Sequence record: MT612988.1
DNA: 64,000 nt
Strand: one strand, 5' to 3'
The notes under the pieces are model-generated. The model ran no database searches. It had not been told where the DNA came from and saw only the letters and a list, made by a program, of their open reading frames with translations. Below, in pieces: positions 9,306 through 63,239 of the stretch. Made by a program: the position numbers and the translations under genes. Positions within the stretch are counted from its first letter, which is position 1. The number at the start of each line of letters is the position of its first letter.

Positions 9306-9557
9306 TTACGGTAAACGTAAGTCTTTTGCAGTGATGTAGATGTCTGTGTCAGGGTCGTAGTACATACCCTCACGTGCATCGTAGTAATAAACTTTACCAT
9401 TCAGGTCAGTATATGGACCCTCTAGACCTGAATTAGACAAGTCTGGGTAACGGCTATCATCTACTTTACGATGTTTGACAACACGCTCGTGAAACTCTTG
9501 TTCAGTTTCTTGCAGTTTGACTTCACCTTTTTTGAAAAAATCGTTAAAACCTTTCAT
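9306..9557 (-). CDS. Small late protein with capsid-targeting-like N-terminus (83 aa)
   Basis: Start moved to MKGFNDFFKKGEVKLQE (GAGGT SD); TATAAATA late promoter at 9583-9590; C-terminal YYYD/YYDP repeat. Confidence 0.7.
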   Translation of the reverse strand: MKGFNDFFKKGEVKLQETEQEFHERVVKHRKVDDSRYPDLSNSGLEGPYTDLNGKVYYYDAREGMYYDPDTDIYITAKDLRLP

Positions 9558-9582
9558 GTTAAACCTCTTTATTTGTTTAACG

Positions 9583-9590
9583 TATTTATA
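9583..9590 (-). promoter_or_regulatory. T4-type late promoter TATAAATA
   Basis: Exact consensus 26 bp upstream of the ATG at 9557. Confidence 0.75.
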
Positions 9591-9591
9591 A

Positions 9592-10605
9592 TCAATTGTA
9601 ACTATATACTGAAGGGAAGTAGAATTCGTCAAGCCAGTCATCATACCACTCGTAGAAATCATTAACCAATTCAGGTGTGTGATTCGGAAGTGACGTTGTA
9701 TCTTTTGCATTTTCTAGCACTTCAAGACGTTCTTGCAGCACTTCAGACACATATTCCCACTTGTACTTACCTTGTTTCACGTCACGATAGAACGCTGCGT
9801 TCTTCAAAGGGAATTCCAACTTACCTACTGTTAGTATATCGATTGCTTGATCGATTACACGCATGGCATGTGATATCGCTTTCCAATCTGAACCACTTGC
9901 AGCACGCGCTTGATATGCACGAGCACCATATTTGCTCATCATCTTCTCAAGACGACCCGCAGCTTCTTCAAACGTTATCTCAAGACCGAATACTTTCTCA
10001 AGCACACTGAATGCAGGGTCTTTCAAATCGCTCGCGTCTTTAGTTTTAGGCCCATGATACCACTGAAAACGCACGTGAGCGTCTTCTGCACACAGTTCCC
10101 ATAGTTGTTTGCACAACTCAGGGCTTGAACCCAACTTCGCTTTAGAATCGACGTTGTGCGTCTCTACAGCACGGGCGAATTGCATAAGGCTGTTTAGTCG
10201 CGTACCTTTGATGCCGTACTTCTGTGCTTGATTGAGCGCGTAACCAGTCATTGCTTTAACGTTTGATGTCAAATACGTACTTGTTAACTCACGACACATA
10301 GCAGAGAATGCAGGGTTGCAGTCATCTGGGTTCTGTAGTGCATTAAATGCCAATTCAATTGCATACGACTGACCTGCAAGAAAGTCACGCATGAACACTT
10401 GAACTGGTATATATTCAAAGTCTTCATCGTCTGCACCGTTCTTCTCAAACGATTTGCCAGTCGTGTGTACTGAGTTCTTTATTGCAACACCGCGCAACAG
10501 TTTACGTATTTCAGGTTGAAAGACAGCTTTGTAGTCTGTATCTGACTCTGGCGTGTCTGTGCCATAGAGTTTCGAGCCGAATAGACTCGTGAATAGTACA
10601 TTCAT
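9592..10605 (-). CDS. Nucleotidyltransferase (T4 NrdC.11-like, Pol beta superfamily)
   Basis: FGSKLYGTDTPESDTDYKAVF (GS...DxD) and KAISHAMR motifs. Confidence 0.75.
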   Translation of the reverse strand: MNVLFTSLFGSKLYGTDTPESDTDYKAVFQPEIRKLLRGVAIKNSVHTTGKSFEKNGADDEDFEYIPVQVFMRDFLAGQSYAIELAFNALQNPDDCNPAFSAMCRELTSTYLTSNVKAMTGYALNQAQKYGIKGTRLNSLMQFARAVETHNVDSKAKLGSSPELCKQLWELCAEDAHVRFQWYHGPKTKDASDLKDPAFSVLEKVFGLEITFEEAAGRLEKMMSKYGARAYQARAASGSDWKAISHAMRVIDQAIDILTVGKLEFPLKNAAFYRDVKQGKYKWEYVSEVLQERLEVLENAKDTTSLPNHTPELVNDFYEWYDDWLDEFYFPSVYSYN

Positions 10606-10877
10606 TGTACACTCTCCCGCATAGCGATCATTGCGGTGTAGTTCATTACACTCACGTGATCATTATCTTCAAGTGCTTTATCGCGCAACTCATAGAGATA
10701 GTCGATAGAGCACACATTAGGGTCGAACCAACCATGACGACCTTTCTTGCGTGCATCAGCAAGTTTTCTAGCCATTTCGTGACTAGAAGCAATGATCAAT
10801 TGCTTATCAGCCCACTCTTCGTCTGGTTCAATTGATGGGTCAATAGCTAAATTCATGCTTATTTGAAAGAAGTTCAT
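10602..10877 (-). CDS. Hypothetical protein
   Basis: Coupled ORF; KKGRHGW motif. Confidence 0.65.
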   Translation of the reverse strand: MNFFQISMNLAIDPSIEPDEEWADKQLIIASSHEMARKLADARKKGRHGWFDPNVCSIDYLYELRDKALEDNDHVSVMNYTAMIAMRESVQ

Positions 10878-10879
10878 AA

Positions 10880-11344: not shown

Positions 11345-11479
11345 AATATAAATCTCTTTTTGTTGGATTATTGAACGTTTAATCAGAATATGCCTTATGA
11401 TAAGCATTTTTTACACTTTAGTCAACAATTATTTTGTCTTTTTTATGAGAAAATTGTAAATCAAGTAGTGTTGTAGCAC

Positions 11480-11485
11480 TAAATA
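11480..11485 (+). promoter_or_regulatory. Late promoter core TAAATA
   Basis: Upstream of the plus-strand structured region and ORF 11610. Confidence 0.55.
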
Positions 11486-11512: not shown

Positions 11513-11586
11513 CGAGGGTCGTGACTATGTATCGCATTGGTCACTGCGAGTATTGGTTCCAACTATAGTCGCTTCCCTCGTTTTTT
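11513..11586 (+). ncRNA. Candidate three-way-junction RNA or 5-prime leader
   Basis: Outer stem CGAGGG/CCCTCG encloses two hairpins (GTGACTATG/CATTGGTCAC; GCGA...TTG/CAA...TCGC) and is followed by T6. Confidence 0.45.
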
Positions 11587-11609: not shown

Positions 11610-12170
11610 GTGATGGAACTTAAAACATTTGATGAATATAAAGAAACAGAGCTTAAAGAAGCTACAATAAAGCAATGGGCTGGTCGTTCTGCATTAGCTG
11701 GTGCATCTCTCGGTGCTGCATTTGGCTTTATGACCGCAGCAGCGGGTGCGACAGCAACAGGTGGTTTGGCAGTCGCTGTACCACTTGCAACATGGGGTGC
11801 AATTAGTCTCGGTATTCATGGTCTTATTGGTGGTGCGTTATTTGCAGGCGGTCAAGCACGCAAAGACTACAGTGAACTCAAAAAGACTATGAAGAAAATC
11901 GAGAAGTATCGCTCACTGAAACAAGACGATATCACTGAGAAGAAAGTAGCAGCATTTGAAAAAGACTTAGAGCGTTCGCTGTTCTTAGTTCGTAAGCTTC
12001 GCACAAGTCTCAACAGTGACATTGATATTGCAACAGCGAAAGGCGTATTTCGTAGCGACATCAAGCAATCTGATCAATATCTTCAAGGTCTTGAGAAGAT
12101 GGAAGCAGAGCTGATAAAGATTGAAAAGGCTACTAAACGTGCTAAAAAAGCCGCTAAGAAGTCAAAATAA
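11610..12170 (+). CDS. Late protein: CTS-like N-terminus, Gly/Ala hydrophobic hairpin, C-terminal coiled coil
   Basis: MMELKTFDEYKETELKE; GxxxG-rich residues about 25-80; AAGGA SD; opposite strand to neighbours. Confidence 0.75.
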   Translation: MMELKTFDEYKETELKEATIKQWAGRSALAGASLGAAFGFMTAAAGATATGGLAVAVPLATWGAISLGIHGLIGGALFAGGQARKDYSELKKTMKKIEKYRSLKQDDITEKKVAAFEKDLERSLFLVRKLRTSLNSDIDIATAKGVFRSDIKQSDQYLQGLEKMEAELIKIEKATKRAKKAAKKSK

Positions 12171-12171
12171 C

Positions 12172-12202: not shown

Positions 12203-12692
12203 ATCTGCGACGTTTTTTAAACTTCGATTTTTTCACTTTTTTGACTGCTCGATTTAAAAAGCTTTCTTTTTTCTGTTTCTTCTTGACTACAGTCTTTGTT
12301 ATCTTCTTCGCTTCTACCTTTTTAGGTTCAACACGTTTAATCACTGGCGCTTTCTTTACAGGCTGCTTGATTACAACTTGCTTAACGTGCGTCTTCTTCG
12401 ACTCAAAAGAATCACCTACTTCGTCGATTAACTCAGCAGCAACAAAACCAATCGCTGCATCACCTAAATCAAACCCGTCATCTTGCTGTACAACGACTGT
12501 CTGTGGTTGTTGCGGTTGTTCTTCAACAACAGGCGGCGTCACATCAAACTTTTCAGTAGTTGGTGCGTCAACTAGTAGCTGTTCATCTTCTTGTTCAGCA
12601 TAGTAAGCGTTAGTATCAAGCGTCGCAGGTTTGTTGTCACATGCGGCAAGTGTCAGTGTTGCTAGTGCAACGAGTATAATTTTACGAATCAT
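12201..12692 (-). CDS. Lipoprotein with Lys-rich C-terminal tail
   Basis: Lipobox LAAC after a signal peptide; tail ends KKVKKSKFKKRRR. Confidence 0.7.
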   Translation of the reverse strand: MIRKIILVALATLTLAACDNKPATLDTNAYYAEQEDEQLLVDAPTTEKFDVTPPVVEEQPQQPQTVVVQQDDGFDLGDAAIGFVAAELIDEVGDSFESKKTHVKQVVIKQPVKKAPVIKRVEPKKVEAKKITKTVVKKKQKKESFLNRAVKKVKKSKFKKRRR

Positions 12693-13372
12693 AATAGCTC
12701 CGTGTGAAATAATTCACTAGTTTCTTCAAAGAATTTAACAGCATCTTTTTCATTGATGAAAGTATGCCACTTCATTGATGTATGTTGCGTTTCGACTATT
12801 AGCTGATTTATTGCTACGACATATCGACCGCTATCATCTTGACCAAGTGTAACAAATCTATCGGCTTTATCGTTGCTGTCAAAATACTGGTCAATTATTG
12901 TATCTATACCATGTGCATCTTTATCAAATCGAACTTCTTGATCGATGCCTAAATGCGTCTCAAGACGGTCTAGTTTGTGCAATAATGCATCGTTCTGACT
13001 CTTCAACACGCGATTCTGAATGCTTTTATCAAACTTGGACACGACCCATGAGTTGATAATACCAATAGTCAAACCCAGTAACGATGTACCAACAACAAAC
13101 ATACACCCGATGACATATCGACCACCTGTAGTGACAGGGTACTTGTCACCAAAACCGATTGTACTCATTGCCATCCATACTGTCCAGAAAGAATCACCCG
13201 GTGTTGTGATGTTCGCGTCAGGGTTTTGTATTTCGAATGAAAATAATATATTTGCCGCAGTAAGTGCTATTGATAGAGCGATTACTATCATCAAACCGAA
13301 TATCATCAGCATATTATACTGAGCAACTCCATGCTCATCGTATTTTCGAATATGTTTCTTAAATCGTTTCAT
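12689..13372 (-). CDS. Two-TM potassium channel (KcsA-like)
   Basis: TM1, pore helix DSFWTVWMAMS, filter TIGFGDKYPVT, TM2, cytoplasmic tail. Confidence 0.88.
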   Translation of the reverse strand: MKRFKKHIRKYDEHGVAQYNMLMIFGLMIVIALSIALTAANILFSFEIQNPDANITTPGDSFWTVWMAMSTIGFGDKYPVTTGGRYVIGCMFVVGTSLLGLTIGIINSWVVSKFDKSIQNRVLKSQNDALLHKLDRLETHLGIDQEVRFDKDAHGIDTIIDQYFDSNDKADRFVTLGQDDSGRYVVAINQLIVETQHTSMKWHTFINEKDAVKFFEETSELFHTELL

Positions 13373-23913: not shown

Positions 23914-24522
23914 TCACATAAAGAAATAGGGATTTTCAAGAGTCTTGAACTCGTTTACGACTGTCATCTTAAACGTCTTCAAGTCGATGTTAAACACTTT
24001 ATTTGGCTCAACATGCTCTGGAGTTAAAATCGTTCGCGTGCTGCTAAACGATGTACCGTCTTCGCTCATGAACAACGGGCTAATTTCATTACGAAATACA
24101 CGCAAATTGCCGTTAATGAAGTGAAAACAAGCAAACGTACCGTCAAGTTCGTTTAATTTGCCGTAGCAAATCGCTTCAGCGATGTGTGCAGTATCCCATT
24201 CTTGAGTCTGTTTTTTCATGTAATGATCTTTAAGAATGCCATTATGCCACACGTGTGAATCATGCAACTGACCGTTCTCTTCAATTGTTACAATAGCGGG
24301 ATGTGCTTGAGCACTTGTTCCCGTTGGTGCTTGTACATGACAGATATAAAAATCTGCACTATCAGGCACATTAGTTGTATTGAACGCCCCTGTAAACTTG
24401 TGAACCGTCACATGACCGTTCTTAAACGTACTCACAGAGTGAGTACGCGAACCACGATGAATATTACTCTTTGACAATTCAATAAGCTCTTGCTTGCTTC
24501 TAGCAGCAAATAGTCCACACAT
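23914..24522 (-). CDS. Class II (Ntn) glutamine amidotransferase domain protein
   Basis: N-terminal MCG nucleophile, RG.., AHP, WHNGI, DT and GTFA motifs; coupled to queC. Confidence 0.75.
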   Translation of the reverse strand: MCGLFAARSKQELIELSKSNIHRGSRTHSVSTFKNGHVTVHKFTGAFNTTNVPDSADFYICHVQAPTGTSAQAHPAIVTIEENGQLHDSHVWHNGILKDHYMKKQTQEWDTAHIAEAICYGKLNELDGTFACFHFINGNLRVFRNEISPLFMSEDGTSFSSTRTILTPEHVEPNKVFNIDLKTFKMTVVNEFKTLENPYFFM

Positions 24523-25238
24523 TAATGACCTGCCTTAGCAAATACTTGTTCCCATGGGATATCAATCGAGTAAGGTGCTGGGTCTTTAATACCCGCTTTA
24601 CCGAAGTTCATGATGCGTTCAGCACATGACGGACATTTACCACAGCTTTCACCTGCTTCGTTAGGGTCGTAACACGTTAGACTATCTTCAAACGGTACAC
24701 CGAGCTTAACACCAATAGCGATTTCATCTGCCTTTGACATACGAGCGAACGGAGCAAGTAATGCAATCTCGTGTTGACGATTCAGTGCAGATAGATTGTT
24801 CATGCCGTCAAGAAAGTCTTGTGTGCAGTCCCAGTAACCGTATGCGTCATGCACTTGAATGCCAGTAAAAACCGCTGCACAGCCATTTGCTTGCGCGAAT
24901 GAGAACGCGATTGTGTTCAATAGCATATTACGATATGGAACTTCAGTTGGCGGTTGAGGGTCGCCTAGAACGTCTTGAATAGTTGGCATAGCAACATCTG
25001 AACCAGCGATATTTGCACATACAGGTGCTACCACTTCACCTAAGAATGAGATGTCGATTAGACGATGCTCGATACCGAGCTTTTGACAAGTCAATTTAGC
25101 TTTTTCTAGCTCAATTGACTGTTTTTGACCGTAGTAGAACGATAATGCAAACACATTGTCTTTGCCGTATTCATCTACTAGTTTGTACGTAAGGATTGTT
25201 GAGTCCAAGCCACCGCTTAGAACAGATACTACTTTCAT
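24522..25238 (-). CDS. queC: 7-cyano-7-deazaguanine synthase
   Basis: Start moved to MKVVSVLSGGLDS; YGQK, VPYRN, YWDC, TCY, CGKCPSC. Confidence 0.92.
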   Translation of the reverse strand: MKVVSVLSGGLDSTILTYKLVDEYGKDNVFALSFYYGQKQSIELEKAKLTCQKLGIEHRLIDISFLGEVVAPVCANIAGSDVAMPTIQDVLGDPQPPTEVPYRNMLLNTIAFSFAQANGCAAVFTGIQVHDAYGYWDCTQDFLDGMNNLSALNRQHEIALLAPFARMSKADEIAIGVKLGVPFEDSLTCYDPNEAGESCGKCPSCAERIMNFGKAGIKDPAPYSIDIPWEQVFAKAGH

Positions 25239-25293
25239 TTTTAACCTCTCAAGTATATGAGTGCTCACAATTGAACACTCATCATAGCTCTTA

Positions 25294-26202
25294 TTACTGA
25301 CGGAATAAACAACTTCCGTTAGTGTGCGAGACAACTTCACTACCAAGTGCTTCTGGTAGTAGTTCTTCATGCGTTGCACGTGCTGGGCAGATATTCCAAC
25401 CGCCGCGACGTGTGTATAACGCTGTTACCATAAGCTCTTGTGGGTCGAACTTATCAAGTAACGCTTTGTAAATCATTTCAACACATTCTTCATGGAAATG
25501 ATTCTCTTTACGGAATGACACGATGTATTGCATGAGACTGTCAATAGTTGGTGTTTTTTCACCTTTCATGTATACATACAGATCACCGAAATCTGGTTGA
25601 TGCGTCACGCGACAGTTAGAACGTAGATTCGGCGTGAACACTTTCATGCGCTTCACGTGAGATTCTTGCAGTAAATCAGCATCTGCACCGCTTTCTGAGT
25701 CGAATACAGTGTCTTCAGATACGTATTTGTCGAGTTCTGCATACCCTGTCATACCGTGCGGTTGTGTTGATCTGACTGTGAAGAAGCTCACTTGTACTTC
25801 AGCACCGATGACTTCAGATAGATCACGCGACGCGATAGCTTCAATTGCACCTTGTACTTCAGCACGAGTCGCAGCGACTTTAGCCATGTTGAAGCTGTTC
25901 CAATACAGTTTCATTGATTTACTTTCAACGATATTCGGTGAATCGCTTGGGTACACGACTTTCGCCATACCAGATACAGGCAGACCTTGTTCAGTCAGTG
26001 CCGATACTTCGAAGCCATGCCATGTATCAAACCCTGCAAAGTCTTCGTTTGTGATACCGTAATCAGTTCGATTTAGCTCACGCGGGATTGGTACAAGTAA
26101 ATCTGGTCGAACGTCTACGATATTAACGAAATCGCTGTAATCGCCAGCTTTTTTACCTAAATGCTCAGCCGCAATAGCTGATACTTCATCATAATTGCTC
26201 AT
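25294..26202 (-). CDS. queF: NADPH-dependent preQ0 reductase (bimodular QueF)
   Basis: VESKSMKLYWNSF; catalytic SNCRVTHQPD; HFHEECVE; YTRRGG. Confidence 0.88.
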   Translation of the reverse strand: MSNYDEVSAIAAEHLGKKAGDYSDFVNIVDVRPDLLVPIPRELNRTDYGITNEDFAGFDTWHGFEVSALTEQGLPVSGMAKVVYPSDSPNIVESKSMKLYWNSFNMAKVAATRAEVQGAIEAIASRDLSEVIGAEVQVSFFTVRSTQPHGMTGYAELDKYVSEDTVFDSESGADADLLQESHVKRMKVFTPNLRSNCRVTHQPDFGDLYVYMKGEKTPTIDSLMQYIVSFRKENHFHEECVEMIYKALLDKFDPQELMVTALYTRRGGWNICPARATHEELLPEALGSEVVSHTNGSCLFRQ

Positions 26203-26231
26203 GTATACCTCATAAAGAGCGCCCGTAGGCG

Positions 26232-27611
26232 CTATTCTTGTTCTTTGAAAGCTGGGAATTCAGCAGTTGTACCGCGACGAATACGCATAGATGGTAGCTT
26301 GTCAATATGACTTGCGTGCCATCGCTGATATGCAGCAACGTCTTTCACATCAAGTAATTTGTTTAAAACGTCTAGACGACGTTCTTTCGACCAATGCTTG
26401 AAGCCCGATTGCGGCTCTTTTTTCTCAACAGAACCATCGAAGAATGATGATAAATCAACTGCTTTCGGTGTATTCAAGTCAAACGTTTCGGAGATGATTG
26501 CTTGGAAATTATTGACTTGTGATAAGATTATACACATATTACAAGCAACTTCAAACACAATATCTTCGTCTGTCATCGTTTCTTTGTCGAGTTCTTTCAA
26601 CCACAATCGTGTTGCGAACTCTTTGAACTCTTCCTTACCCCGAGGTAACACATGACCGAAACGACCCCACACTTCATCTAGCATTTCATCTAGTTCACGC
26701 GACGGTAATTTCTTACCATCTTTAAAGATGCCGTGACCTGAGATCTTACGACGACGACCGAGCTTATCTGTGTATTCACGATTGGTTAAACAACCAGTGT
26801 GAGTTGATGAGTCGTAGCTAATGTGAAAATCATCACCGAAATAACCGCTTCTGATAAGAGCTACAGCAGGCAACAATCGCTTAACAGAACCGACACCTAG
26901 CATATGCACAGATTTCTTTGCTTTATCTGGGATGTTGAGCTTCGGAATGACACTCATCATGTCAATAGACTCACGCACGCCATTACCAATACATGTATCG
27001 GCAGCAGCACACCCAGCAATGTGATGCTCAACGCCTTCAAGTTGTGACATTATACCATCACTGAATGCCTTAAAGTCATCGTCTGAGTTGCCTTGTAAGA
27101 TTATGTACGGTTTACAATCGCTTTCTTTCTCAAGATATGTTTCAATCTGAGCGCGTATGTTCTTACCTGTTTTAACACCGTATTTGTACGCTAGATCATA
27201 CATGAAGACCTTGTCTTTCGTGTTGATACGAGCAGAACCACCACCTTGTGCTTCATTGTGCAACGGGATTTCATCGAAACACATGCCAATATCACCAGAC
27301 TCTGCTTGATTCTCGTAAACTGCTTTACGAAGTTCTGGTGTATTCTCTAGACCTAAGTTAACAATCTGAAGACCGCCAGAATCGACATGAATCTTGTATA
27401 CAGAATCACCGAACAAGTCTTTAATTTGCTTACCGACTTTCTTTTCAGTGTATGCGTTATACAACATACTGATTTTATGAACACCGTCGAGATCTTGTGC
27501 TGTGTCTAGTATTTTACGCAAATAGGACGTGTCAACCACGTCCATTAGTTTATGTGCTGCACCAAGACGAGCATGACCCGTCGCAGACATAACGTATTCA
27601 ATTATCATCAA
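26232..27611 (-). CDS. TGT-fold guanine transglycosylase (DpdA-like, probably DNA-modifying)
   Basis: HVDSGGLQ, MCFDEIP, ILQG, HMLGVG, SYDSST TGT-family motifs; lies inside the que/folE cluster. Confidence 0.72.
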   Translation of the reverse strand: MMIIEYVMSATGHARLGAAHKLMDVVDTSYLRKILDTAQDLDGVHKISMLYNAYTEKKVGKQIKDLFGDSVYKIHVDSGGLQIVNLGLENTPELRKAVYENQAESGDIGMCFDEIPLHNEAQGGGSARINTKDKVFMYDLAYKYGVKTGKNIRAQIETYLEKESDCKPYIILQGNSDDDFKAFSDGIMSQLEGVEHHIAGCAAADTCIGNGVRESIDMMSVIPKLNIPDKAKKSVHMLGVGSVKRLLPAVALIRSGYFGDDFHISYDSSTHTGCLTNREYTDKLGRRRKISGHGIFKDGKKLPSRELDEMLDEVWGRFGHVLPRGKEEFKEFATRLWLKELDKETMTDEDIVFEVACNMCIILSQVNNFQAIISETFDLNTPKAVDLSSFFDGSVEKKEPQSGFKHWSKERRLDVLNKLLDVKDVAAYQRWHASHIDKLPSMRIRRGTTAEFPAFKEQE

Positions 27612-28280
27612 TTACCCTCGTGCTAGAGACATGAATTCGGCGCGTGCTTCTGGTTCGGTACGAAATGCACCTGATAGGTGACTTGTAACAGTGCTTGAGT
27701 TGTTGTCTTCAACACCGCGTGCCTTGACGCAATAGTGTTTTGCGTCGATCAATACTGCCACGTCTTCAGTTTCAAGAATGAACTTCAGTGCTTCAGCGAT
27801 TTGAACAGTCAAACGCTCTTGAATCTGTGGGCGTCGAGCAAAGTACTCGACGATGCGATTCATCTTAGAAAGACCAAGTACTTTCTTATTTGGGATATAT
27901 GCAACTGTTGCAAAGCCGTCGATTGTTACGATGTGATGCTCACATTGTGAAAGAACAGTAATGCCTTTTTCACAAACCATCTGATCGTAGTTCATTTTGT
28001 TGTCTACAGCAGTACATTTAGGGAACATATCTGGTGATAGACCGCTCATGAGTTCATTGACCATCATCTTAGCCCAACGCTTCGGTGTATCAACAAGCGA
28101 ATCGTCAGTAAGGTCAAGACCTAGAGCTTGCATGATGTCAGTGAATCGATCTTCAAGAATTACTTTCTTTTCATCATCAGTTAGACCGTTTTCAACAGTC
28201 GGCGTGTGCATTCCGATTTCACGAAGATGCGCTTCAACTTTTTGTCCAAGAATTGGATCTACTTTATTTTTGTCTAACAT
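27612..28280 (-). CDS. folE: GTP cyclohydrolase I
   Basis: DTPKR, CEHH, GLSKMNR, RPQIQERLT, HYCVKARGV. Confidence 0.95.
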   Translation of the reverse strand: MLDKNKVDPILGQKVEAHLREIGMHTPTVENGLTDDEKKVILEDRFTDIMQALGLDLTDDSLVDTPKRWAKMMVNELMSGLSPDMFPKCTAVDNKMNYDQMVCEKGITVLSQCEHHIVTIDGFATVAYIPNKKVLGLSKMNRIVEYFARRPQIQERLTVQIAEALKFILETEDVAVLIDAKHYCVKARGVEDNNSSTVTSHLSGAFRTEPEARAEFMSLARG

Positions 28281-28347
28281 TCTATTTCCTCTTAGTCAGA
28301 AAACAATAATAGCACGCCGAAGCGTGCTACTAAACATTAATTGTTGA

Positions 28348-29280
28348 TTACTTATAGAGTAATTCTTTGTTGATTTTGATGTCAACGACTGCGCCTTTCG
28401 AAAGACCTTCAGATACCCATACACGCTGTACACCCATACGCTGAAACTCGTCTTCGTATGTTTTTGCAATGTAGTTCGCGAGATTTTCAACTGTAGTTTC
28501 AGTGTTGATTACGATTGTTTCTTCTGAATCGATGTTCAAATAGAAATTACCACGCTGTGAACAATACGCTACCGCACCTTCCGCAGTTAGATTGTCGTTC
28601 CATACGATGTAGCCGCTCATTTCTTCAGCAATGCGCTCCAGTACTTTGCGACCACGACTGTTTAACATGGCATCAACTGCAATGAACGAACGATGTCCAT
28701 GTGCAATGTTCTGACACCCATAAGAAGAGCTAGAACGCAAGCCATGAGCGTAATGAAATGAAACGTGCGTGTTTGCCCATGATGGCAAGTCAAAGCTCTC
28801 TGAAAGCTCTACAGTGACGTGTGTGACCGGATAGCCTTGTAGTTTAAGCTGCTTCAGCAACATATTTTCAAGATACTCGGTTAGATAGTTCATGTACAGC
28901 GTATCCGACGGGATGTGAAGATCAGTATCGAATAGCGATACATCGACGATCTCTTGATACCAGTCATTGACAGACGAAACAGCAGTGAATAACGGAGAGT
29001 CGATTTGTGTACGGTCACGATTTTCAATATCGCTTAACACATATTCACTGTATCCGTTGACAAGAACTAGACGGTGATCAATTGCGTGTTCAGATTCGTC
29101 TACTAACTGCTTGATCGCTTTCTTGCAACCGCTGAAGTCAATTACGACTTGCTCAGTTTCATCTACTTCGCCGGTGATTTCAACACATAGATTGTAACTC
29201 ATACCGTTAATTTTACCGTTTTCATCAACGTATGCGTGATCGATGCATGTGATGTTGTTTAAAAACATTGTACTTTTCAT
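28348..29280 (-). CDS. queD: QueD-like 6-carboxytetrahydropterin synthase with tandem T-fold domains
   Basis: N domain IDHA...VVIDF...DHR; C domain YAHGL...CQNIAHGH...TTVENLA. Confidence 0.72.
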   Translation of the reverse strand: MKSTMFLNNITCIDHAYVDENGKINGMSYNLCVEITGEVDETEQVVIDFSGCKKAIKQLVDESEHAIDHRLVLVNGYSEYVLSDIENRDRTQIDSPLFTAVSSVNDWYQEIVDVSLFDTDLHIPSDTLYMNYLTEYLENMLLKQLKLQGYPVTHVTVELSESFDLPSWANTHVSFHYAHGLRSSSSYGCQNIAHGHRSFIAVDAMLNSRGRKVLERIAEEMSGYIVWNDNLTAEGAVAYCSQRGNFYLNIDSEETIVINTETTVENLANYIAKTYEDEFQRMGVQRVWVSEGLSKGAVVDIKINKELLYK

Positions 29281-29334
29281 ATGTTTCTCTCTTGTTAAAG
29301 CTCTATTATAAGTCCGAATTACTTATATTAAACA

Positions 29335-29787
29335 TTATTCGTCTTCGAACATAATAACTTTCACACCACGAGCATCTAGCCAATGCCACCAATCGGGTTG
29401 TGAACCGCTGTAAATCGAACCTACAATGAGAATTTTGATACCAGCCGCGACTATCAGCTTGGCACAGTTATGACACGGCGACGTTGTAACATACATAGTC
29501 GCGCCTTCAGTAGATATGCCAGCGCGTGCAGCGTAGCAAATCGCGTTTTGTTCCGCATGTATCTCGTGAATTTCTGACCATTGACGGTGAGTTAAATCAC
29601 CGAAGTCATCGGTATCTTTACAGTGAAGCATACCTGACGGTGTACCATTGTAACCGTGTGAGATAATACGATCATTCTTGACGATGACAGCACCTACTTG
29701 CTTCTGTGTGCAGGTGCTTTTCTTAGCAAATGACTTGGCGATGTCAAGATACACCAAGTCATAATAGCTTTTGTTCTTCGGGAACAT
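29335..29787 (-). CDS. cd: dCMP deaminase
   Basis: QVGAVIV, GYNG, HAEQNAI, SPCHNC. Confidence 0.92.
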   Translation of the reverse strand: MFPKNKSYYDLVYLDIAKSFAKKSTCTQKQVGAVIVKNDRIISHGYNGTPSGMLHCKDTDDFGDLTHRQWSEIHEIHAEQNAICYAARAGISTEGATMYVTTSPCHNCAKLIVAAGIKILIVGSIYSGSQPDWWHWLDARGVKVIMFEDE

Positions 29788-30104
29788 TACGATAACAGAG
29801 CAGCTTTAACTAGTTCATCAAACTTCGCATCAGCTTTCTTTACGTAAACTGGTGCGTTGATTGTGTTGAAGTCAGCAAGAGCAACAGCAGATAGGTTACG
29901 AATGTGGTATACTGCGTTGCGCGTCTCTGCGTATACTTTGTTGTCGATTACTTTGAATGATTCAATCGGCGCAGTTAATGCGTGCTCGCCTTGCTCATGA
30001 CCAACCATTGAATTGAAGAAACGACCTTTGATGCGATTCGTCTCAACGAATTCTTTAGAAGTAAGTTCGATTGCAGCAGTGAAGTTAACGTTGAATGTAG
30101 TCAT
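29787..30104 (-). CDS. Hypothetical protein (paralog of 30166-30465)
   Basis: G..ALTAPI..F......YAETRNAVYHI pattern. Confidence 0.6.
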   Translation of the reverse strand: MTTFNVNFTAAIELTSKEFVETNRIKGRFFNSMVGHEQGEHALTAPIESFKVIDNKVYAETRNAVYHIRNLSAVALADFNTINAPVYVKKADAKFDELVKAALLS

Positions 30105-30165
30105 AATATATTTCTCTCAAAAAGTAATCAAAAATAGTGAATTCGTTTGTATTAAAGCAGAATTT

Positions 30166-30465
30166 CTAGTTGTTGTAAAGCGGAATGTTAATACCGCGTT
30201 CAGCAGCGTCTTTAATCATTTGCGTAATCTCGTCAAAAGACACGTTGGTTAGTTGATAACGACTCTTAGAGTGCGTCACAGCATACACAATACCGCCATT
30301 GATTTCAACATACATGACATTAGAAGTCATGATTTCGCCTGCGTCATTGAATCGCTCGATTGAGTGACCGCTTGCTTGACCAACTAGAATGTGAGTTTTA
30401 TTCGGGTTGAACCCTGTGTTCACAAACTGCTTCATTGATAGTTCTAACTTACCAGTAATATCCAT
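30166..30465 (-). CDS. Hypothetical protein (paralog of 29787-30104)
   Basis: F.DAGEIMTSNV......VYAVTHSKSRYQL pattern. Confidence 0.6.
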   Translation of the reverse strand: MDITGKLELSMKQFVNTGFNPNKTHILVGQASGHSIERFNDAGEIMTSNVMYVEINGGIVYAVTHSKSRYQLTNVSFDEITQMIKDAAERGINIPLYNN

Positions 30466-30477
30466 GTTTGTTACCTC

Positions 30478-30672
30478 TTAAAATTCGATGTTTGATGCTT
30501 GAACTGTCTGAACAGCACCGATTTTAGCAGGTTTGCCGAAACAGTCAACACCGCCTGTGATTCTAACAGTGTAGTTGTCTTTGTTACCAAGACGGTTTAC
30601 TGAGTTTTCGTCGTGTGAAACGATTTCAACTTCAGTGTATTTGCCAAAACCTTGATTGATGCGTGCTTTCAT
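30478..30672 (-). CDS. Hypothetical protein
   Basis: First gene after a TTGCAT-17-TATTAT promoter with the conserved leader. Confidence 0.65.
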   Translation of the reverse strand: MKARINQGFGKYTEVEIVSHDENSVNRLGNKDNYTVRITGGVDCFGKPAKIGAVQTVQASNIEF

Positions 30673-30766
30673 AATGTTCTCTCTTTGTTAGTAGTCGATG
30701 TCGTTTCGATGTAGCTATAATAGGCGTTTCGTGAAATTCATGCAACCGTTTTTTTGCTCTAAAACG

Positions 30767-30791
30767 AAAAAAGGTAGCCGAAGCTACCTTT
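30767..30791 (-). terminator. Intrinsic terminator
   Basis: GGTAGC-TTCG-GCTACC plus T-run. Confidence 0.8.
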
Positions 30792-30797
30792 CTGTAT

Positions 30798-31673: not shown

Positions 31674-31674
31674 T

Positions 31675-32885: not shown

Positions 32886-32888
32886 AGA

Positions 32889-40285: not shown

Positions 40286-40315
40286 ATTATTCTCTTTTTC
40301 GTTTTCGATAAAGCT

Positions 40316-40355
40316 ATAATACAAAAAAGGGCTGACATCTGTCAACCCTTTTTTT
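40316..40355 (-). promoter_or_regulatory. PeSL-like terminator/early promoter
   Basis: AAGGGTTGACAGATGTCAGCCCTTT identical to the copy at 1172-1196, followed by TATTAT. Confidence 0.8.
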
Positions 40356-40359: not shown

Positions 40360-41811
40360 TTATTCTTCGTCTTCGTCGTCTTTGTACTCAGATACATCAA
40401 CGCCGTTTTCTTCAGCAAGCTCAATAAGTGCTTCATCAAATGACGGACCGAAGTTACCATTTATAGCGTATTCAAACACCTCTTCTTGATATGGATCTGA
40501 GTTATTCATCAAGAACTCAGCAGCTTCGCGACCATCTAACCCCAGTACGTTAAATACCGCACCAATTGCAGATTCGCGCACGTCTTCATCATGGTCTGCT
40601 AGAAGTTCCTCAACTCGATAACCTTGTTCGGCTACGTATTGGCGTTCTTCGTAATCATCTGTATCATCGATCATTCTATCCCAGATATCTTCTGCCATAT
40701 CGCGACCGAATTCACTTTCGTAGCGTTTCGCATATGTGATACGTGTGTCTGCATCGTCGTTTGAGAATGACCAATCCCACGCTGTGTCCCGTACATCTTC
40801 ATCTGAGTCAAGAACAAGATCCCAAATACCAAAACCCATGTCCGCAGCTTGTTTACGGTGTTGCCAATCGCCAGATGAAGCAAGTTTATCGCCCATTTCG
40901 TAATCTGACTCAACTACCGCTGCACGAACGTCTTCGTCATCGTGGAAAATCAGCTCTTCGTGCATCAGACCCCAACTAGCAATACGAACTAGAGTTTGCC
41001 AATCTGCGTGTTCAATGATTTCATCTTCACGACCTTCATTGATCCATGCTTCGATTTGATATTGATCTGCTTCATCAACAAAATCTTCAAGAGACGGTCC
41101 GCCACCGAATGCTGTATCGTAGCTGCTAGAACGCTCGTTCTCGTTGGTAAGAGTGAAAGAGACAGAACCACTCATGCTCATCAACGCTTGGTTAACGTCG
41201 CTGTCGCTCATTGAAAGAATACTGCGCGTCACGTTCTTACGAACAGAGCGGAAATCGTTTGCACCACCTGCTAGACGTGCAAGCCAACGGTCGCTAATCT
41301 CAGTCGAATAGCCGTATTCTTTACCAAACGTCAACGATAGAGCGTAGTAAAGCATCGGACGAGAAATCAAGTCTTTCAATAGCTTTTTCTTGCTTTCTTC
41401 ATCTAAACGAGTCGCTTCGCGTCGATTGTTAACAAGTGCGTAGTACTCGTGATTCTTTGGTAGTTCATAAGCTGCGCTGAAGTCATATTCATACGGCTTC
41501 ATGCCCATTTCTTCTTCATACGTCTCGGTGAATTCACGTAGAGTCGTCAATACACCAGAGAATACCGCAGCCGCAGAGTGTCCTGCTTTACCTGTCTGAG
41601 CATAACCACCTGAGTTTTGGAATGTAATAGTGAAATAACCAGGGTTGCTTTCTTCAACACCAACTTCAAATCGCTCACCAGCAGCGTCGAATCGCGCTGA
41701 AGTCTCGCCCGTCCCGTTCTCATGACCCCAATCCCAATCAATGTCGATATTCGCACGATCAGAAATCTCATCAAGGCGAACTTCTTGATAAAATTCGTTA
41801 AATTGTTTCAT
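40360..41811 (-). CDS. Putative internal virion protein, family A, with C-terminal HEAT/LRV-like repeats
   Basis: MKQFNEFYQEVRLDE; repeats LIFHDDEDVRAAV, LVLDSDEDVRDTA, LLADHDEDVRESA; late promoter at 41840. Confidence 0.7.
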   Translation of the reverse strand: MKQFNEFYQEVRLDEISDRANIDIDWDWGHENGTGETSARFDAAGERFEVGVEESNPGYFTITFQNSGGYAQTGKAGHSAAAVFSGVLTTLREFTETYEEEMGMKPYEYDFSAAYELPKNHEYYALVNNRREATRLDEESKKKLLKDLISRPMLYYALSLTFGKEYGYSTEISDRWLARLAGGANDFRSVRKNVTRSILSMSDSDVNQALMSMSGSVSFTLTNENERSSSYDTAFGGGPSLEDFVDEADQYQIEAWINEGREDEIIEHADWQTLVRIASWGLMHEELIFHDDEDVRAAVVESDYEMGDKLASSGDWQHRKQAADMGFGIWDLVLDSDEDVRDTAWDWSFSNDDADTRITYAKRYESEFGRDMAEDIWDRMIDDTDDYEERQYVAEQGYRVEELLADHDEDVRESAIGAVFNVLGLDGREAAEFLMNNSDPYQEEVFEYAINGNFGPSFDEALIELAEENGVDVSEYKDDEDEE

Positions 41812-41839: not shown

Positions 41840-41845
41840 TATTTA
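41840..41845 (-). promoter_or_regulatory. Late promoter core TAAATA
   Basis: 29 bp upstream of the ATG at 41811, just downstream of a terminator. Confidence 0.65.
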
Positions 41846-41853
41846 GACAAAAC

Positions 41854-41883
41854 AAAAAAATCCCGTCTTAACCGACGGGATTT
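41854..41883 (-). terminator. Intrinsic terminator
   Basis: TCCCGTC stem pair plus T7 on the minus strand. Confidence 0.75.
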
Positions 41884-51001: not shown

Positions 51002-51060
51002 ATTGTATTCCTCAAAATTAAGAGGCTTGCACCTCTTAATTTTATTAGCAAGTTGAATAC

Positions 51061-51498
51061 CTACTTAACGTATCCCCACTCAAGGAAATATCCCTCAGTG
51101 AAGAGTTGTTTAGCAAGTACAACTTGACTGATCACATGATAACGCTCATCGTCGTTTGAAATTTCACTTGAATAGTCGCGAGACTCTTGATGCGATTTTG
51201 CATAATTCTCGACAATCGTAACCCAATCGCCTGAGTTGATTACGCTGACGTGCTCGGGACATGCGCGATAGATTTTAACTTTCGCATTCGGGTTTCCGTG
51301 ACAGCGTTTGATGATTTGATACGCCTCGCGCTCATCGCGATCATTGTGATTGCCGTACCATCGTAGACCGTTCGCTTCGTATACATCTTCAGGGAATGTT
51401 CCCGTCAATGAGATATCGTACAGAGGGCTGTCATCAGGAGGTGACGGCGCTCGGTGTTGCATGTGATATTCGCTCAAAAATTCAGTGTAAGTTTTCAT
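51061..51498 (-). CDS. Putative internal virion protein, possible ADP-ribosyltransferase fold
   Basis: MKTYTEFLSE (close to T4 MKTYQEFIAE); IYRA...GDWVT...YA...EWGY. Confidence 0.6.
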   Translation of the reverse strand: MKTYTEFLSEYHMQHRAPSPPDDSPLYDISLTGTFPEDVYEANGLRWYGNHNDRDEREAYQIIKRCHGNPNAKVKIYRACPEHVSVINSGDWVTIVENYAKSHQESRDYSSEISNDDERYHVISQVVLAKQLFTEGYFLEWGYVK

Positions 51499-51881
51499 TA
51501 TGCACCTATCTTATACTTGTATCGTAGATTCCAGTTTTTAGAATCGCGGAACGAGATCACGCGAAACTTATTATCGCCAGTAAATTCGTGCGACTCAGGG
51601 TGCGCGATTTTACATAGATTCCAGTCTTCAAGTAACTTGGCAATGTTATTACGACGTTCAATATCTTCGTCAGTAATTTCTACACATCGACCGTCAAGTG
51701 CTAGAAGCTCTTTAAAGTGAACTAGAAAATACACGCCACGTTTCTGAAGAATATGGCACGATTGATATAGAGTATTTGTTTTGTTATTGGCGATGCCAAT
51801 TCGCGTTAAAGTCTCGCGAATTTTTAGAAATGCATCGTCGTCTGGTAATTGAATTTCAAGTTTGTTAATGTAATCTGCCAT
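51498..51881 (-). CDS. regA: RegA translational repressor
   Basis: FLKIRETLTRIGIAN, LYQSCHILQKRG.Y..VHFKELL.LDG. Confidence 0.95.
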   Translation of the reverse strand: MADYINKLEIQLPDDDAFLKIRETLTRIGIANNKTNTLYQSCHILQKRGVYFLVHFKELLALDGRCVEITDEDIERRNNIAKLLEDWNLCKIAHPESHEFTGDNKFRVISFRDSKNWNLRYKYKIGA

Positions 51882-51912: not shown

Positions 51913-51924
51913 TATTTATAAATA
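51913..51924. promoter_or_regulatory. Palindromic back-to-back late promoters TATTTATAAATA
   Basis: TATAAATA on plus (51917-51924) and on minus (51913-51920), between divergent regA and the GIY-YIG gene. Confidence 0.7.
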
Positions 51925-51947: not shown

Positions 51948-52532
51948 ATGTTTCATATCGTATATAAAATAATAAACAACATAAACAATAAAGTTTATAT
52001 TGGTAAACACTCAACGAATAACATCGACGACGGTTACATGGGTTCTGGAAAGATTATATTTCGCTCAATTGATAAATACGGTGTTTATAATTTCACAAAG
52101 ATAATTTTAAAAACGTTCGACTGCGAAGAAGACGCATATGAATACGAATCTCTGATAGTGAACGAAAAATTTGTAAGTAGTAAAAACACCTATAATCTCA
52201 AAATAGGCGGCGAAGGCGGTAGTGTAAAGGGAACTAAACGTTCCGAAACAACTCGCCGAAATATTTCAGACTCTCTTAAAGGCAAGCCCAAGAGCAATGA
52301 ACATAAACAAAAGCTCAGTGATGCTAAAGTAGGGAAGCCTAGTAATCGTAAGGGTGTACCGTCTACATTCAAAGGAATTGAGAGAACACGCGATGTAAAG
52401 AAAAAGATTAGTGACAGTTGGGATGAGAGACCAATTTCAGTTTGTATTCATTGCGGCAAATCTTCAAAGAATGCCGCAACTATCAAACGTTGGCACAATG
52501 ACAACTGCAAACATAAACCCGATTCTGTTTAG
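51948..52532 (+). mobile_element. Free-standing GIY-YIG homing endonuclease (Seg-like) with NUMOD3 repeats
   Basis: IVYKIIN..NNKVYIGKH, YMGSG, YNLKIGG; NUMOD3-like SETTRRNIS and SNEHKQKLS; inserted between 62 and regA on the opposite strand. Confidence 0.88.
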
Positions 52533-60777: not shown

Positions 60778-61044
60778 TTAAACTATTCGTTTTGCTCGTT
60801 TTGCTCGTTCTGTAAGTGCATCTGAGAATTCCGCTTCTAATGTTTCTAATGTATCGTCTAATGTTACAGTAACAACACACATAGAGTCAAGAAGAATAAA
60901 TGTCACTTTTTCTTCGTCTGTCTTGATTGTTAAATCTTCGTCAGGCATAATCATGAATTCTCGCGACCAGAATGCGAAAGACGTAGCAGGGCAGTCTAGC
61001 ATATCACGTACAGTAGTAAGGCGAATTGATTCAGTAATCATCAT
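60778..61044 (-). CDS. Hypothetical protein
   Basis: First gene after a PeSL-like promoter. Confidence 0.6.
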   Translation of the reverse strand: MMITESIRLTTVRDMLDCPATSFAFWSREFMIMPDEDLTIKTDEEKVTFILLDSMCVVTVTLDDTLETLEAEFSDALTERAKRAKRIV

Positions 61045-61085
61045 AATGTACTCTCTTTGTTTTCGTATCTCGTTTCGATAGAGCT

Positions 61086-61121
61086 ATAATACGCAAAAAG
61101 GGTTGCCGAAGCAACCCTTTT
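61086..61121 (-). promoter_or_regulatory. PeSL-like terminator/early promoter
   Basis: AAAAGGG-TTGCTT-CGGCAACCCTTTTTGCG-TATTAT (17-bp spacer; UUCG loop). Confidence 0.75.
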
Positions 61122-61138
61122 ATTCAAATAATTTCAAA

Positions 61139-61786
61139 TTATTTTGTCCAAACTACCGAAGCACCTGAACCAGATTTCTTGTAACCGTACTTTGAAAGGT
61201 CTGGAATACGTTGAAAGCTGTCTTTCGCTGTAACTACACCGCGAGTAGCAATTTCTTTAGCCACGTCTCTTGTTGCATTACCTGCTTCAATCTGCATAGA
61301 CAGATCTGGATATTCTTGAGCAATGAATTGCATCATGATATCGTTTTTGCTTTTACCACTGATCACGTTCAACACAGTTTGAGTAATGTCAGTACCGCGA
61401 GTGATATGGAAAACTTTACCACGAGCACGAGACTCAACATCACGAATAATCTCTGCTTCGACTTCTTCAGGTACAACGTTCAGTACGTAAGAAGTAAACG
61501 CCGTATCGAATGATTCCCCATTTGGGATAGTCAGACTGACATCAGTCCAACCATCAGCAGATGTACCATTGAATTTGTCATATGCATACGTTTTGATGCC
61601 TTCAGAGCGTAAAAATTCAGCGTTACGACCGTATTTACCAGCACCATAGTCAAGAGCAGTACCACCCGGTGTAAACATACCTTTCTTGTATAGTTTAACC
61701 AGTGCTGCTACTTCTTTACCACGTATCGACGTTGCTGCGGAACTGTACTTTTGTACTTCAGTTAAAAATTCACCAAATTTCTTCAT
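61139..61786 (-). CDS. Class I SAM-dependent methyltransferase with CTS-like N-terminus
   Basis: Start moved to MKKFGEFLTE; ALDYGAGKYG, YAYD, FDTAFTSYVLNVV. Confidence 0.75.
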   Translation of the reverse strand: MKKFGEFLTEVQKYSSAATSIRGKEVAALVKLYKKGMFTPGGTALDYGAGKYGRNAEFLRSEGIKTYAYDKFNGTSADGWTDVSLTIPNGESFDTAFTSYVLNVVPEEVEAEIIRDVESRARGKVFHITRGTDITQTVLNVISGKSKNDIMMQFIAQEYPDLSMQIEAGNATRDVAKEIATRGVVTAKDSFQRIPDLSKYGYKKSGSGASVVWTK

Positions 61787-61793
61787 TGTGCAC

Positions 61794-63239
61794 CTACTTA
61801 ATATCAATATCAATCAGATAGTTCGTTGCGTTAACGCTGAACTCAATCAAAGTACCGTCAACCGAAACGTCAACGCCGTTTTCAACGATGTTTTCCATCA
61901 TCGAGTAAAGTGTTTCTTGATCAAGCATCGCTTCAGAGAAAGATTGACCAACCTTGAATGAACTGAACTGATCATTTGCAAGAGCACGAATCAGTGAATC
62001 AACATCATCAACCATTTCAGTCACTGGACGTAGACTAGACATGATATTCGGGTGGAATACACGATTCGACTCAGCCATTGTTGAAAATGCAGTCACTGTT
62101 TGACGCTCAGGGGTAACACAACCATCGAACGATAGCATAGCTTCAGCAAATGCTTTACAGTCAAAACGTTTCACGCCTTTACGTTCCATCATCGCAATCA
62201 TATCAAGAAGCGGGTAACCTGCTTCAGATAATTCAACGCGATATTCTTCACACACACGACCTGCACGCATAGCATGTTCCGCGTTTGTTAGAACAATACT
62301 TGTGTTGTTGTGTTTCAGCTTCCAACCGTTGTCAAAATACGCTTCTTTCACATCAACAAGATTTTGCCATGCAGTCGATGTCAGTGGCGCAGTCGCGATT
62401 TCTTTCGTGAAAACGTTCTGAGCATGTTCAATCATGGTGATGTTCTGTTTCAGATCGTATGCTTTGAATCCTTCTAGCATCGGCAAGCCAGTATCGTCTT
62501 TACGTTCACGAGCGTATGATACGTCTTTCGCTTCTTTTACAATGAACAAGTCCATGATTTTACGGTTCAGTGCAGCCAATGTAAGTGCATTTTTACCAGA
62601 CTTGATTTTCATCTCAGTGATGTCAGACAGTTCGGCTTTTGAATCAACCGATTCAACAGTCACATAAACGTCACCAAGCTCGATGTTTTCAGCCATTGAC
62701 AGTATTTCAGATGCTGAATTGTCATCAATTGATAGCGATTCAATTACAAGCTTATCAGAATCAGCAAGATTAATTTTCATTTCACGCATAGGGAAAACAA
62801 CGTGAATGTCATTTTTCTTATAACCAAGCTTAGTCGCTTCGGCAACAACCTGATCTAAGTAACCGCCTTTAATCACGATGCTAGGAAGACGAGCTTCAGT
62901 ACACATGATCATAGACTTAACTTGCTGTAGCTCATGTGCTGGCAATGATAAGAATTCGTTTTCCATAAGCAAGTTGATTGTGCTTACGTTCTCGCTCAGA
63001 TTAATATCGAAGTTTTTCTCATCGACGTTTTTATCTTCAGCAAGTTTAGTACTCATGATAGATTTAAGCTCATTTGCCTTTTCCATCATGCCGATAGTTG
63101 TTTCAACGCCTTTGCCTTTGCTGAACTCAGTAGATGCAGTGCCTAGCTCAACAATAACTTGACCAAACTTAGGGTAGATTTTACCACCCTGAGTTTGACG
63201 GCGATTTTCACTCAGAAATGAGTCAAAGTTACCTAACAT
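61794..63239 (-). CDS. Large hypothetical protein with CTS-like N-terminus
   Basis: MLGNFDSFLSE; possible degenerate P-loop start KFGQVIVELG; TAAATA within gene 55 at 63421-63426. Confidence 0.65.
   Translation of the reverse strand: MLGNFDSFLSENRRQTQGGKIYPKFGQVIVELGTASTEFSKGKGVETTIGMMEKANELKSIMSTKLAEDKNVDEKNFDINLSENVSTINLLMENEFLSLPAHELQQVKSMIMCTEARLPSIVIKGGYLDQVVAEATKLGYKKNDIHVVFPMREMKINLADSDKLVIESLSIDDNSASEILSMAENIELGDVYVTVESVDSKAELSDITEMKIKSGKNALTLAALNRKIMDLFIVKEAKDVSYARERKDDTGLPMLEGFKAYDLKQNITMIEHAQNVFTKEIATAPLTSTAWQNLVDVKEAYFDNGWKLKHNNTSIVLTNAEHAMRAGRVCEEYRVELSEAGYPLLDMIAMMERKGVKRFDCKAFAEAMLSFDGCVTPERQTVTAFSTMAESNRVFHPNIMSSLRPVTEMVDDVDSLIRALANDQFSSFKVGQSFSEAMLDQETLYSMMENIVENGVDVSVDGTLIEFSVNATNYLIDIDIK

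Follow-up and report, generated by a model that had tools for sequence, protein, structure and literature searches.

We confirmed eight open reading frames (ORFs) in Vibrio phage vB_ValM_R10Z (hereafter R10Z) whose predicted proteins begin with a short leader resembling the capsid targeting sequence of T4 internal proteins (Ips), in which two aromatic residues spaced three apart are followed by (L/I)-x-E. The window analyzed here comprises 64,000 nucleotides (nt) and is identical in sequence to bases 1–64000 of MT612988.1. Taken together, the evidence makes it likely that the eight ORFs carry T4-type capsid targeting sequences and constitute a capsid-targeted cargo set of the T4 type. R10Z is a KVP40-like phage with a 247 kb genome (Schizotequatrovirus, Straboviridae), and the window covers its replication and nucleotide-metabolism arm, including genes for rIIA/B, DNA polymerase, clamp and clamp loader, regA, gp46/47 and gp55, nearly all of which are carried on the minus strand.

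The ORFs are named by the letter c and their lower window coordinate (c9306, c11613, c30798, c31675, c40360, c51061, c61139 and c61794; Table 1). All eight, which had been proposed in a preliminary description of the window, are real, and each is annotated as a hypothetical protein in MT612988.1. The N-termini quoted in that description stand as well, whereas three of its coordinates took in upstream non-coding codons; the corrected extents are 9306–9557 (not 9710), 11613–12170 (not 11610) and 61139–61786 (not 61813).

Leader statistics and conservation

In T4 IPIII, the first 10 residues are sufficient for packaging, with residues 4 and 7 mainly governing targeting and residues 8 and 10 governing processing, and the propeptides of T4 Ips are 10–19 residues long (PMC9026906). 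The leaders of c51061 (MKTYTEFLSE) and c61139 (MKKFGEFLTE) fit these rules position by position, and can be compared with those of coliphage RB32 Ips (MKTYQEFITE and MKTFKEFINE) and with the N-terminus MKTYQEFLNE of the protein in the ipI position of Klebsiella phage Marfa (all comparator leaders were taken from database records). The c40360 leader contains F4, F7, Y8 and E10, plus LDE ending at position 15, and the remaining ORFs retain the aromatic spacing and (L/I)xE through a register shift or a longer leader. The resulting candidate cleavage sites, with the position of the glutamate, are LQE-17 in c9306, LKE-16 in c11613, LTE-12 in c30798, LNE-11 in c31675, YQE-10 or LDE-15 in c40360, LSE-10 in c51061, LTE-10 in c61139 and LSE-11 in c61794.

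To quantify this likeness, we built a profile (profile 1) exclusively from residues 2–10 (nine positions) of the leaders of RB32 Ip4, Ip5, Ip7 and Ip9, which are annotated in record DQ904452.1 (accession from PMC3037559), and scored the 108 window proteins against a null of the 16,207 interior 9-mers of the same proteins. The preliminary claim of a likeness to T-even Ip leaders was borne out, with seven of the eight ORFs ranking within the top eight (scores in Table 1), the sole intruder being a potassium-channel-like membrane protein (12689–13372). The top interior 9-mer scored 23.5, so that c51061 and c61139 exceed the entire null. The eighth ORF, c31675, falls short in ungapped scoring; it is the tandem paralogue of c30798 and has the same leader displaced by one residue. 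A second profile (profile 2), derived from the Marfa protein and the leaders of three small late-promoter ORFs in the tRNA region of R10Z, placed ORFs from the preliminary description in ranks 1–7 among the 108 proteins, with c9306 scoring 15.8. In the reverse control, in which profile 2 was applied to 27 RB32 coding sequences, the four Ips and one further ORF scored 25–34 and the other 22 scored no more than 14.5. Across the R10Z genome, an aromatic-x-acidic-aromatic pattern near residue 4 occurs in 12–14 of ~385 annotated starts, compared to ~2 expected. The excess of leaders in the window is well beyond chance, and most of the 108 window genes are devoid of the pattern.

A side result concerns RB32 itself: the unnamed ORF133 (DQ904452.1, 66618–67091; 157 amino acids (aa)), which is flanked by direct repeats, has a leader-profile score of 26.2, level with the annotated Ips, and is probably an unannotated internal protein, judging from its N-terminus.

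The key leader positions are conserved in orthologues from related phages. Among six c40360 orthologues, with identity down to 49%, K2, F4, F7, Y8, E10 and E15 are invariant and residues 3, 5 and 6 vary. In c11613 orthologues from four phages (42–66% identity), KTF(D/E)E(F/Y) and the L-x-E preceding ATI.QWA are kept and the intervening residues vary. In the c30798 family (nine sequences, orthologues and paralogues together), L10 and E12 are invariant and the first 12 residues are the best conserved part, the rest being 46–64% identical. The c9306 orthologue in phage 1.081.O (83% identity) has the same leader.

For c51061 and c61139, the wider families point to a leader that is separable from the domain behind it. 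The c51061 core-domain profile hits 3,780 representative clusters, and most of these matches begin at profile position 8–10, inside the protein. Many of the matching proteins are 1200–4000 aa long, and large ones also bear NUDIX, GNAT and SprT-like domains and, in one case, ART-PolyVal (in the protein P0070, ART-PolyVal lies in a different region from the c51061-type domain). This recurrence in large multidomain proteins is what is expected of a module shared with polyvalent proteins. Mycobacteriophage Nala gp131 starts exactly at the c51061-type domain, without a leader, and Gordonia phage Skog has it as the C-terminal portion of a fusion with an acetyltransferase. Solo metagenomic relatives have leaders of 8–20 residues, for example MKSFKQFITE; the genomic context of one metagenomic homologue (P0002) contained nothing informative. 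The 1.081.O homologue (217 aa) is encoded elsewhere, behind nrdD, and has a TATAAATA of its own and the leader MYSFSEFINLAE. The proximity of GNAT to ART domains in polyvalent proteins raised the possibility that c51061 is an ADP-ribosyltransferase, which we rejected as unsupported, c51061 showing no similarity to the Alt-like protein of R10Z.

The c61139 family comprises more than 230 proteins, many of which match Pfam Methyltransf_23 (PF13489). [LI]xE occurs within residues 4–16 in 73 of 116 members, compared to 12.8% of interior windows, and one homologue is encoded between the tail sheath and terminase genes. c61139 itself scores 15.5 bits against Methyltransf_23, below the Pfam cut-off of 27, contains the motif LDYGAGK and has an orthologue in 1.081.O annotated as an S-adenosylmethionine (SAM) methyltransferase. 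Comparison of these homologues indicates that both c51061 and c61139 consist of a domain with the leader added on. From the preliminary proposal of a diverse cargo with several probable enzymes, the predicted methyltransferase-family protein c61139 and the polyvalent-shared module c51061 stand, by sequence.

Late motifs, prohead machinery and further leader genes

Known late genes of R10Z are preceded by TATAAATA (gp23, gp22 and gp18) or CTAAATA (tail tube and tail fibres). A late motif lies within ~130 nt of three of the eight leader genes and of 3 of the 100 other genes (p = 0.005), and six of the eight ORFs have conserved late motifs in front of them, three directly and three via an upstream gene or operon. 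The TATAAATA upstream of c9306 is kept in 1.081.O as ATATAAATA at the same distance. The CTAAATA upstream of c40360 is kept in KVP40, nt-1, D485 and F86 and absent in 1.081.O, and this gene forms a self-contained unit in the order terminator, late motif, gene, terminator. c61794 and c61139 are the last genes of an operon (head vertex gene, gp55, c61794, c61139) with intergenic gaps of 7–9 nt, headed by TATAAATA at record positions 64726–64733, just outside the window, which is kept in 1.081.O and D485.

These assignments revise the six late-promoter sites in the preliminary description. The perfect TATAAATA sites at 9583 and 51913 and the conserved CTAAATA sites at 41840 and 11480 are retained, the last of them (motif at 11479–11485) with a correction less clear-cut than the two that follow. 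The other two fail to convince. The site at 63421 is a TTAAATA inside gene 55, the head of the operon being the TATAAATA at 64726–64733, and the site at 33174 overlaps the start codon of another gene. We lean against the latter CTAAATA as a promoter of the c31675–c30798 pair: 1.081.O retains it, but in D485 it reads TTAAATA.

As described previously, sigma-70-type early promoters surround the units: cassettes composed of a terminator and TTGxxx-N17-TATTATAGC follow c40360, c61139 and c30798. They resemble the promoter-stem-loop cassettes of T4-like phages, which have been proposed to drive module shuffling (PMC2839356, PMC4122927). The annotated Ip genes of RB32 themselves have early-type promoter and stem-loop cassettes upstream, so early transcription would not refute packaging, and the earlier view that early-only transcription of the R10Z genes would do so is incorrect.

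R10Z encodes the machinery on which T4 internal proteins depend, namely a gp21-type prohead protease (Peptidase_S77, E = 2e-98) and a gp22-type scaffold (T4 scaffold family, T4_CASP, E = 5e-71). It also encodes an Alt-like ADP-ribosyltransferase with a late-like motif, and this gene adjoins a third c30798 paralogue (record 68388–69269), which bears a leader and a conserved TATAAATA.

The genome-wide leader search suggested in the preliminary description was performed with the RB32 profile (the R10Z record beyond the window was read as separate pieces, not joined) and yielded seven more candidates, at record positions 168162, 169460, 172629, 236113, 193341, 213550 and 116782. Thus, R10Z probably encodes about 15 leader-bearing proteins, some seven of them beyond the eight ORFs, as estimated from N-terminal scores.

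Three of these candidates (168162, 169460 and 172629), located in the tRNA region (record 168162–173062), encode proteins of 80, 91 and 68 aa annotated as hypothetical. Each has an Ip-type leader and a late motif 27–31 nt upstream, and the 68-aa protein is Lys-rich, with an isoelectric point (pI) of 10. The 168162 product matches the PHROG 'internal head protein' from residue 1, through its N-terminus only. The three ORFs are probably the classic internal proteins of R10Z.

Proposed delivery route and competing explanations

The best explanation of these observations is that the R10Z set is an enlarged, dispersed and partly enzyme-like version of the known cargo directed by capsid targeting sequences. 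Under this model, each protein would be made with an N-terminal propeptide of 10–17 residues containing the two spaced aromatic residues and the terminal (L/I)-x-E; the propeptide would bind the gp22-based scaffolding core during prohead assembly, the gp21-type protease would cut after the glutamate, and the mature protein would stay among the packaged DNA and enter the next host cell along with it. Packaging, cleavage after LxE, injection and an anti-defence role are all predicted by analogy. Our confidence differs among the ORFs: we consider c9306, c11613, c40360 and c51061 to be quite likely capsid-targeted cargo, and for c61139, c61794, c30798 and c31675 the odds appear evenly balanced.

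Several observations weigh against this interpretation. The counts of late motifs in the window are those expected by chance (3 compared to 2.9 expected, and 6 compared to 9.3 expected); enrichment by count was accordingly rejected, and only the placement and conservation of the motifs carry weight. No convincing late promoter was found for c30798 or c31675. The leader of c61794 ends in LSA rather than LSE in 1.081.O, and the c61139 leader of D485 has a Leu in place of its first aromatic residue. Classic internal proteins are basic, whereas c40360 and c61794 are very acidic. Each leader could also be an N-terminal helix that belongs to the structure of its own fold. Finally, our literature search turned up no virion proteomics on KVP40-like phages.

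A related possibility, which we regard as unlikely, is that the shared N-terminus is a generic amphipathic helix, serving in membrane contact, docking or fold capping, and that its resemblance to the leaders of T-even phages arose by convergence. Any short amphipathic helix would show hydrophobic residues at i, i+3 and i+4 and then acidic ones, many methyltransferase homologues have looser versions (for example, MKLSDIFEAK), and c11613 contains a membrane-like Gly/Ala-rich stretch. However, the match of two of the proteins to annotated Ip leaders is better than that of every interior 9-mer, the leader is absent where the same domain occurs in actinophages or in larger proteins, and it co-occurs with late motifs and an (L/I)xE at a fixed distance.

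It also appears improbable that only the small late-promoter ORFs (c9306, c11613 and those of the tRNA region) encode true internal proteins, with c40360, c61794, c61139, c30798 and c31675 having relic or chance leaders and remaining in the cytoplasm of the producing cell. The sizes of T-even Ips (76–190 aa; PMC12373910 and the RB32 record) are compatible with this scenario, as are the above-mentioned promoter gap at c30798 and c31675 and the loss of the cleavage glutamate of c61794. However, a large enzyme, T4 Alt, is packaged and processed at both ends (PMC5694885), the insulated c40360 unit is conserved in five phages, and the third c30798 paralogue, with its conserved TATAAATA, is next to the Alt-like gene. 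Very improbable is selection at the mRNA level, whereby A/U-rich, unstructured first codons (AAA, ACU, UUU, GAA, UUU) would aid initiation and the residue likeness would be a by-product: MK is the commonest protein start in the window and, against a genomic G+C content of 41%, the leader codons are rich in A/T, but residues 4, 7, 8 and 10 are invariant where their neighbors change freely, register shifts preserve the aromatic spacing and LxE, and most window genes lack the pattern.

Among known systems, the capsid-targeted cargo proposed here is closest to the T-even Ips (Ip1–3 of T4 and Ip4–Ip10 of T2, T6 and RB phages). In both groups, leaders of ~10 residues have the same key positions and an (L/I)xE end, the mature parts show no mutual similarity, the genes vary between close relatives, and a T4-type protease and scaffold are encoded. 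There are differences, too. T-even Ips are small and clustered in two hotspots, whereas the R10Z carriers are spread over at least 54 kb and range from 83 to 483 aa; the R10Z set includes a predicted methyltransferase-family protein and a polyvalent-shared module; and several R10Z leaders have 11–17 residues or are shifted. We did not detect similarity of the mature parts to Ip1, Ip2, Ip3 or Ip4–10, and PHROGs places all eight proteins in families of unknown function. Searches of the eight proteins against Pfam, NCBIfam and PHROGs returned nothing significant other than families without an assigned function, and sequence and profile searches of the PDB with c61139, c51061, c30798, c40360 and c61794 gave no significant match.

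T4 Alt offers a precedent for enzyme-sized cargo: this large, late-expressed ADP-ribosyltransferase enters the prohead core, undergoes trimming by gp21 and is injected (PMC5694885, PMC5512222), being cut at ITE-6 and also near the C-terminus (PMC5694885). The Alt propeptide has six residues and is not of the Ip type, and none of the eight R10Z proteins is related to Alt in sequence (c51061 was compared directly). For the polyvalent proteins of phages and conjugative elements, co-injection with the DNA has been predicted (Iyer et al. 2017, PMC5512222). The c51061 core found in such proteins, alongside ART-PolyVal, GNAT, NUDIX and SprT-like domains, occurs in R10Z as a solo protein, and its delivery would use a T4-type leader instead of a MuF- or portal-associated fusion. 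In phiKZ-like and SPN3US-like phages, many head-loaded ejection proteins are cut after glutamate by a gp21-related protease (PMC5694885); in those phages, which belong to a lineage unrelated to R10Z, the cleavage motif is A/S-x-E and no short common targeting leader has been defined.

The candidates in R10Z include a predicted methyltransferase-family protein, a polyvalent-shared module, two acidic proteins of ~480 aa, a basic Gly/Ala protein and fast-diverging paralogues. Judging from this range, the cargo of R10Z is probably far larger than that of T4, and more varied. The internal proteins that bear the leader in T4 are a first line against host restriction, and all three inhibit different GmrSD-type restriction enzymes (PMC12373910).

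In R10Z, DNA modification would follow a different route from that of T-even phages, with genes of a 7-deazaguanine pathway in place of a glucosyl-hydroxymethylcytosine pathway. The queuosine-type cluster at 24522–29280 encodes QueC, a QueF-like protein, GTP cyclohydrolase I and a QueD-like protein, as well as a 458-aa hypothetical protein whose 1.081.O orthologue is annotated as tRNA-guanine transglycosylase-like. These genes imply that R10Z DNA is modified, and this may be relevant to what the injected cargo acts against.

A broader and more tentative proposal, to which we give somewhat less than even chances, is that KVP40-like phages use the leader as a general address tag for about 15 unrelated proteins, including the polyvalent-shared module and active enzymes such as a methyltransferase, that this tag provides phages with 7-deazaguanine-modified DNA with a modular, exchangeable toolkit for the first minute of infection, and that the same tag marks homologous families of cargo in many uncultured marine T4-like phages. 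If so, candidate injected effectors of marine T4-like phages could be listed from a short signature alone, the list would take in hundreds of metagenomic homologues of the methyltransferase and c51061 families, and enzyme-sized cargo beyond Alt would be normal in this lineage. The leader sites also provide virion proteomics with defined targets that have predicted mature N-termini. Since phage therapy in aquaculture is a widely proposed use of KVP40-like phages, what they inject is of practical interest.

Individual genes and neighboring features

Coordinates of the cargo candidates and of the associated signals are compiled in Table 1.

Table 1. Leader-bearing genes, transcription signals and adjacent genes in the R10Z window (1–64000 of MT612988.1)
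Feature	Position	Strand	Profile 1 score	Description
Intrinsic terminator	9281–9300	−		Just past the c9306 stop; closes a one-gene late unit
c9306	9306–9557	−	16.5	83 aa, acidic; 17-residue leader MKGFNDFF...LQE at 9507–9557
TATAAATA	9583–9590	−		25 nt upstream of the c9306 start
CTAAATA, late-promoter-like	11479–11485	+		127 nt upstream of c11613; kept in KVP40, nt-1 and F86
c11613	11613–12170	+	18.0	185 aa, pI 9.7; 16-residue leader at 11613–11660
Early cassette after c30798	30714–30788			Terminator stem-loop fused to an early-type promoter
c30798	30798–31673	−	13.8	291 aa, phrog_6387 family; leader MKFSEYQNELTE at 31638–31673
c31675	31675–32595	−		306 aa, GTG start; tandem paralogue of c30798; leader at 32563–32595
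Additional candidate	37254–38309	+		351 aa; N-terminus MIIFES...ALE; opposite strand; missing from the preliminary description
Early cassette after c40360	40313–40348	−		Terminator stem-loop containing TTGACA, then TATTATAGC; predicted to restart transcription after c40360
c40360	40360–41811	−	21.8	483 aa, pI 4.2; leader at 41767–41811
CTAAATA	41840–41846	−		28 nt ahead of c40360; a terminator (41860–41881) precedes it
Terminator after c51061	51020–51037	−		
c51061	51061–51498	−	32.0	145 aa; 10-residue leader at 51469–51498, then a widespread domain
TATAAATA	51913–51920	−		31 nt upstream of regA (51498–51881); regA abuts c51061
Early cassette after c61139	61083–61117			Terminator and early promoter
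c61139	61139–61786	−	25.5	215 aa, predicted SAM-dependent methyltransferase family; leader at 61757–61786
c61794	61794–63239	−	15.0	481 aa, acidic; leader MLGNFDSFLSE at 63207–63239, pattern displaced by one residue
Upstream operon genes	63249–64000	−		Late sigma factor gp55, 63249–63761; gp24-like head vertex, 63770 to record 64669

The c40360 protein is predicted to consist of an N-terminal domain, HEAT-like repeats and an acidic tail. In c11613, a charged helical tail comes after the Gly/Ala-rich hydrophobic stretch; kinship with a late Gly/Ala-rich protein encoded at 113013 was considered and rejected, the two showing no similarity. For c61794, the search for related loci returned KVP40 and VH7D alone.

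Members of the c30798/c31675 family have in common an N-terminal domain of ~140 residues and diverge fast, with a protein identity of 62% between c30798 and its Va3 orthologue. The Va3 and R10Z genomes are ~99% identical in DNA sequence over 40–52 kb and only ~90% identical at 29300–33700. The alignment indicates that, in the latter region, a leader-bearing gene has undergone local mosaic replacement.

The additional candidate at 37254–38309 has CTAAATA at 37215–37221, 32 nt upstream, and a terminator at 38310–38329, and both the motif and the N-terminus are kept in 1.081.O and D485. It is probably a further late or virion protein, judging from these signals. The first five residues of its MIIFES N-terminus are the same as those of the late paralogue at record 68388–69269.

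The TATAAATA upstream of regA is part of the palindrome TATTTATAAATA at 51913–51924, which contains a perfect TATAAATA on both strands. The plus-strand copy (51917–51924) faces a gene for a Seg-like homing endonuclease (51948–52532).

Additionally, we identified an RNA element of ~70 nt (11513–11580, plus strand) between the CTAAATA at 11479–11485 and the start of c11613, followed by a T-run. We found no tRNA and no match to an Rfam family in this element, and a search of IMG/VR recovered its core in KVP40 and VH7D only. The core is nearly invariant in R10Z, KVP40, nt-1 and F86, whereas the downstream protein is just 42–66% identical. The outer stem covaries (GAGGG/CCCTC compared to GGGAT/ATCCC), and two mutually exclusive inner pairings are both preserved. 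We see two possible roles for the element, as a small late RNA or as a leader of the attenuator kind.

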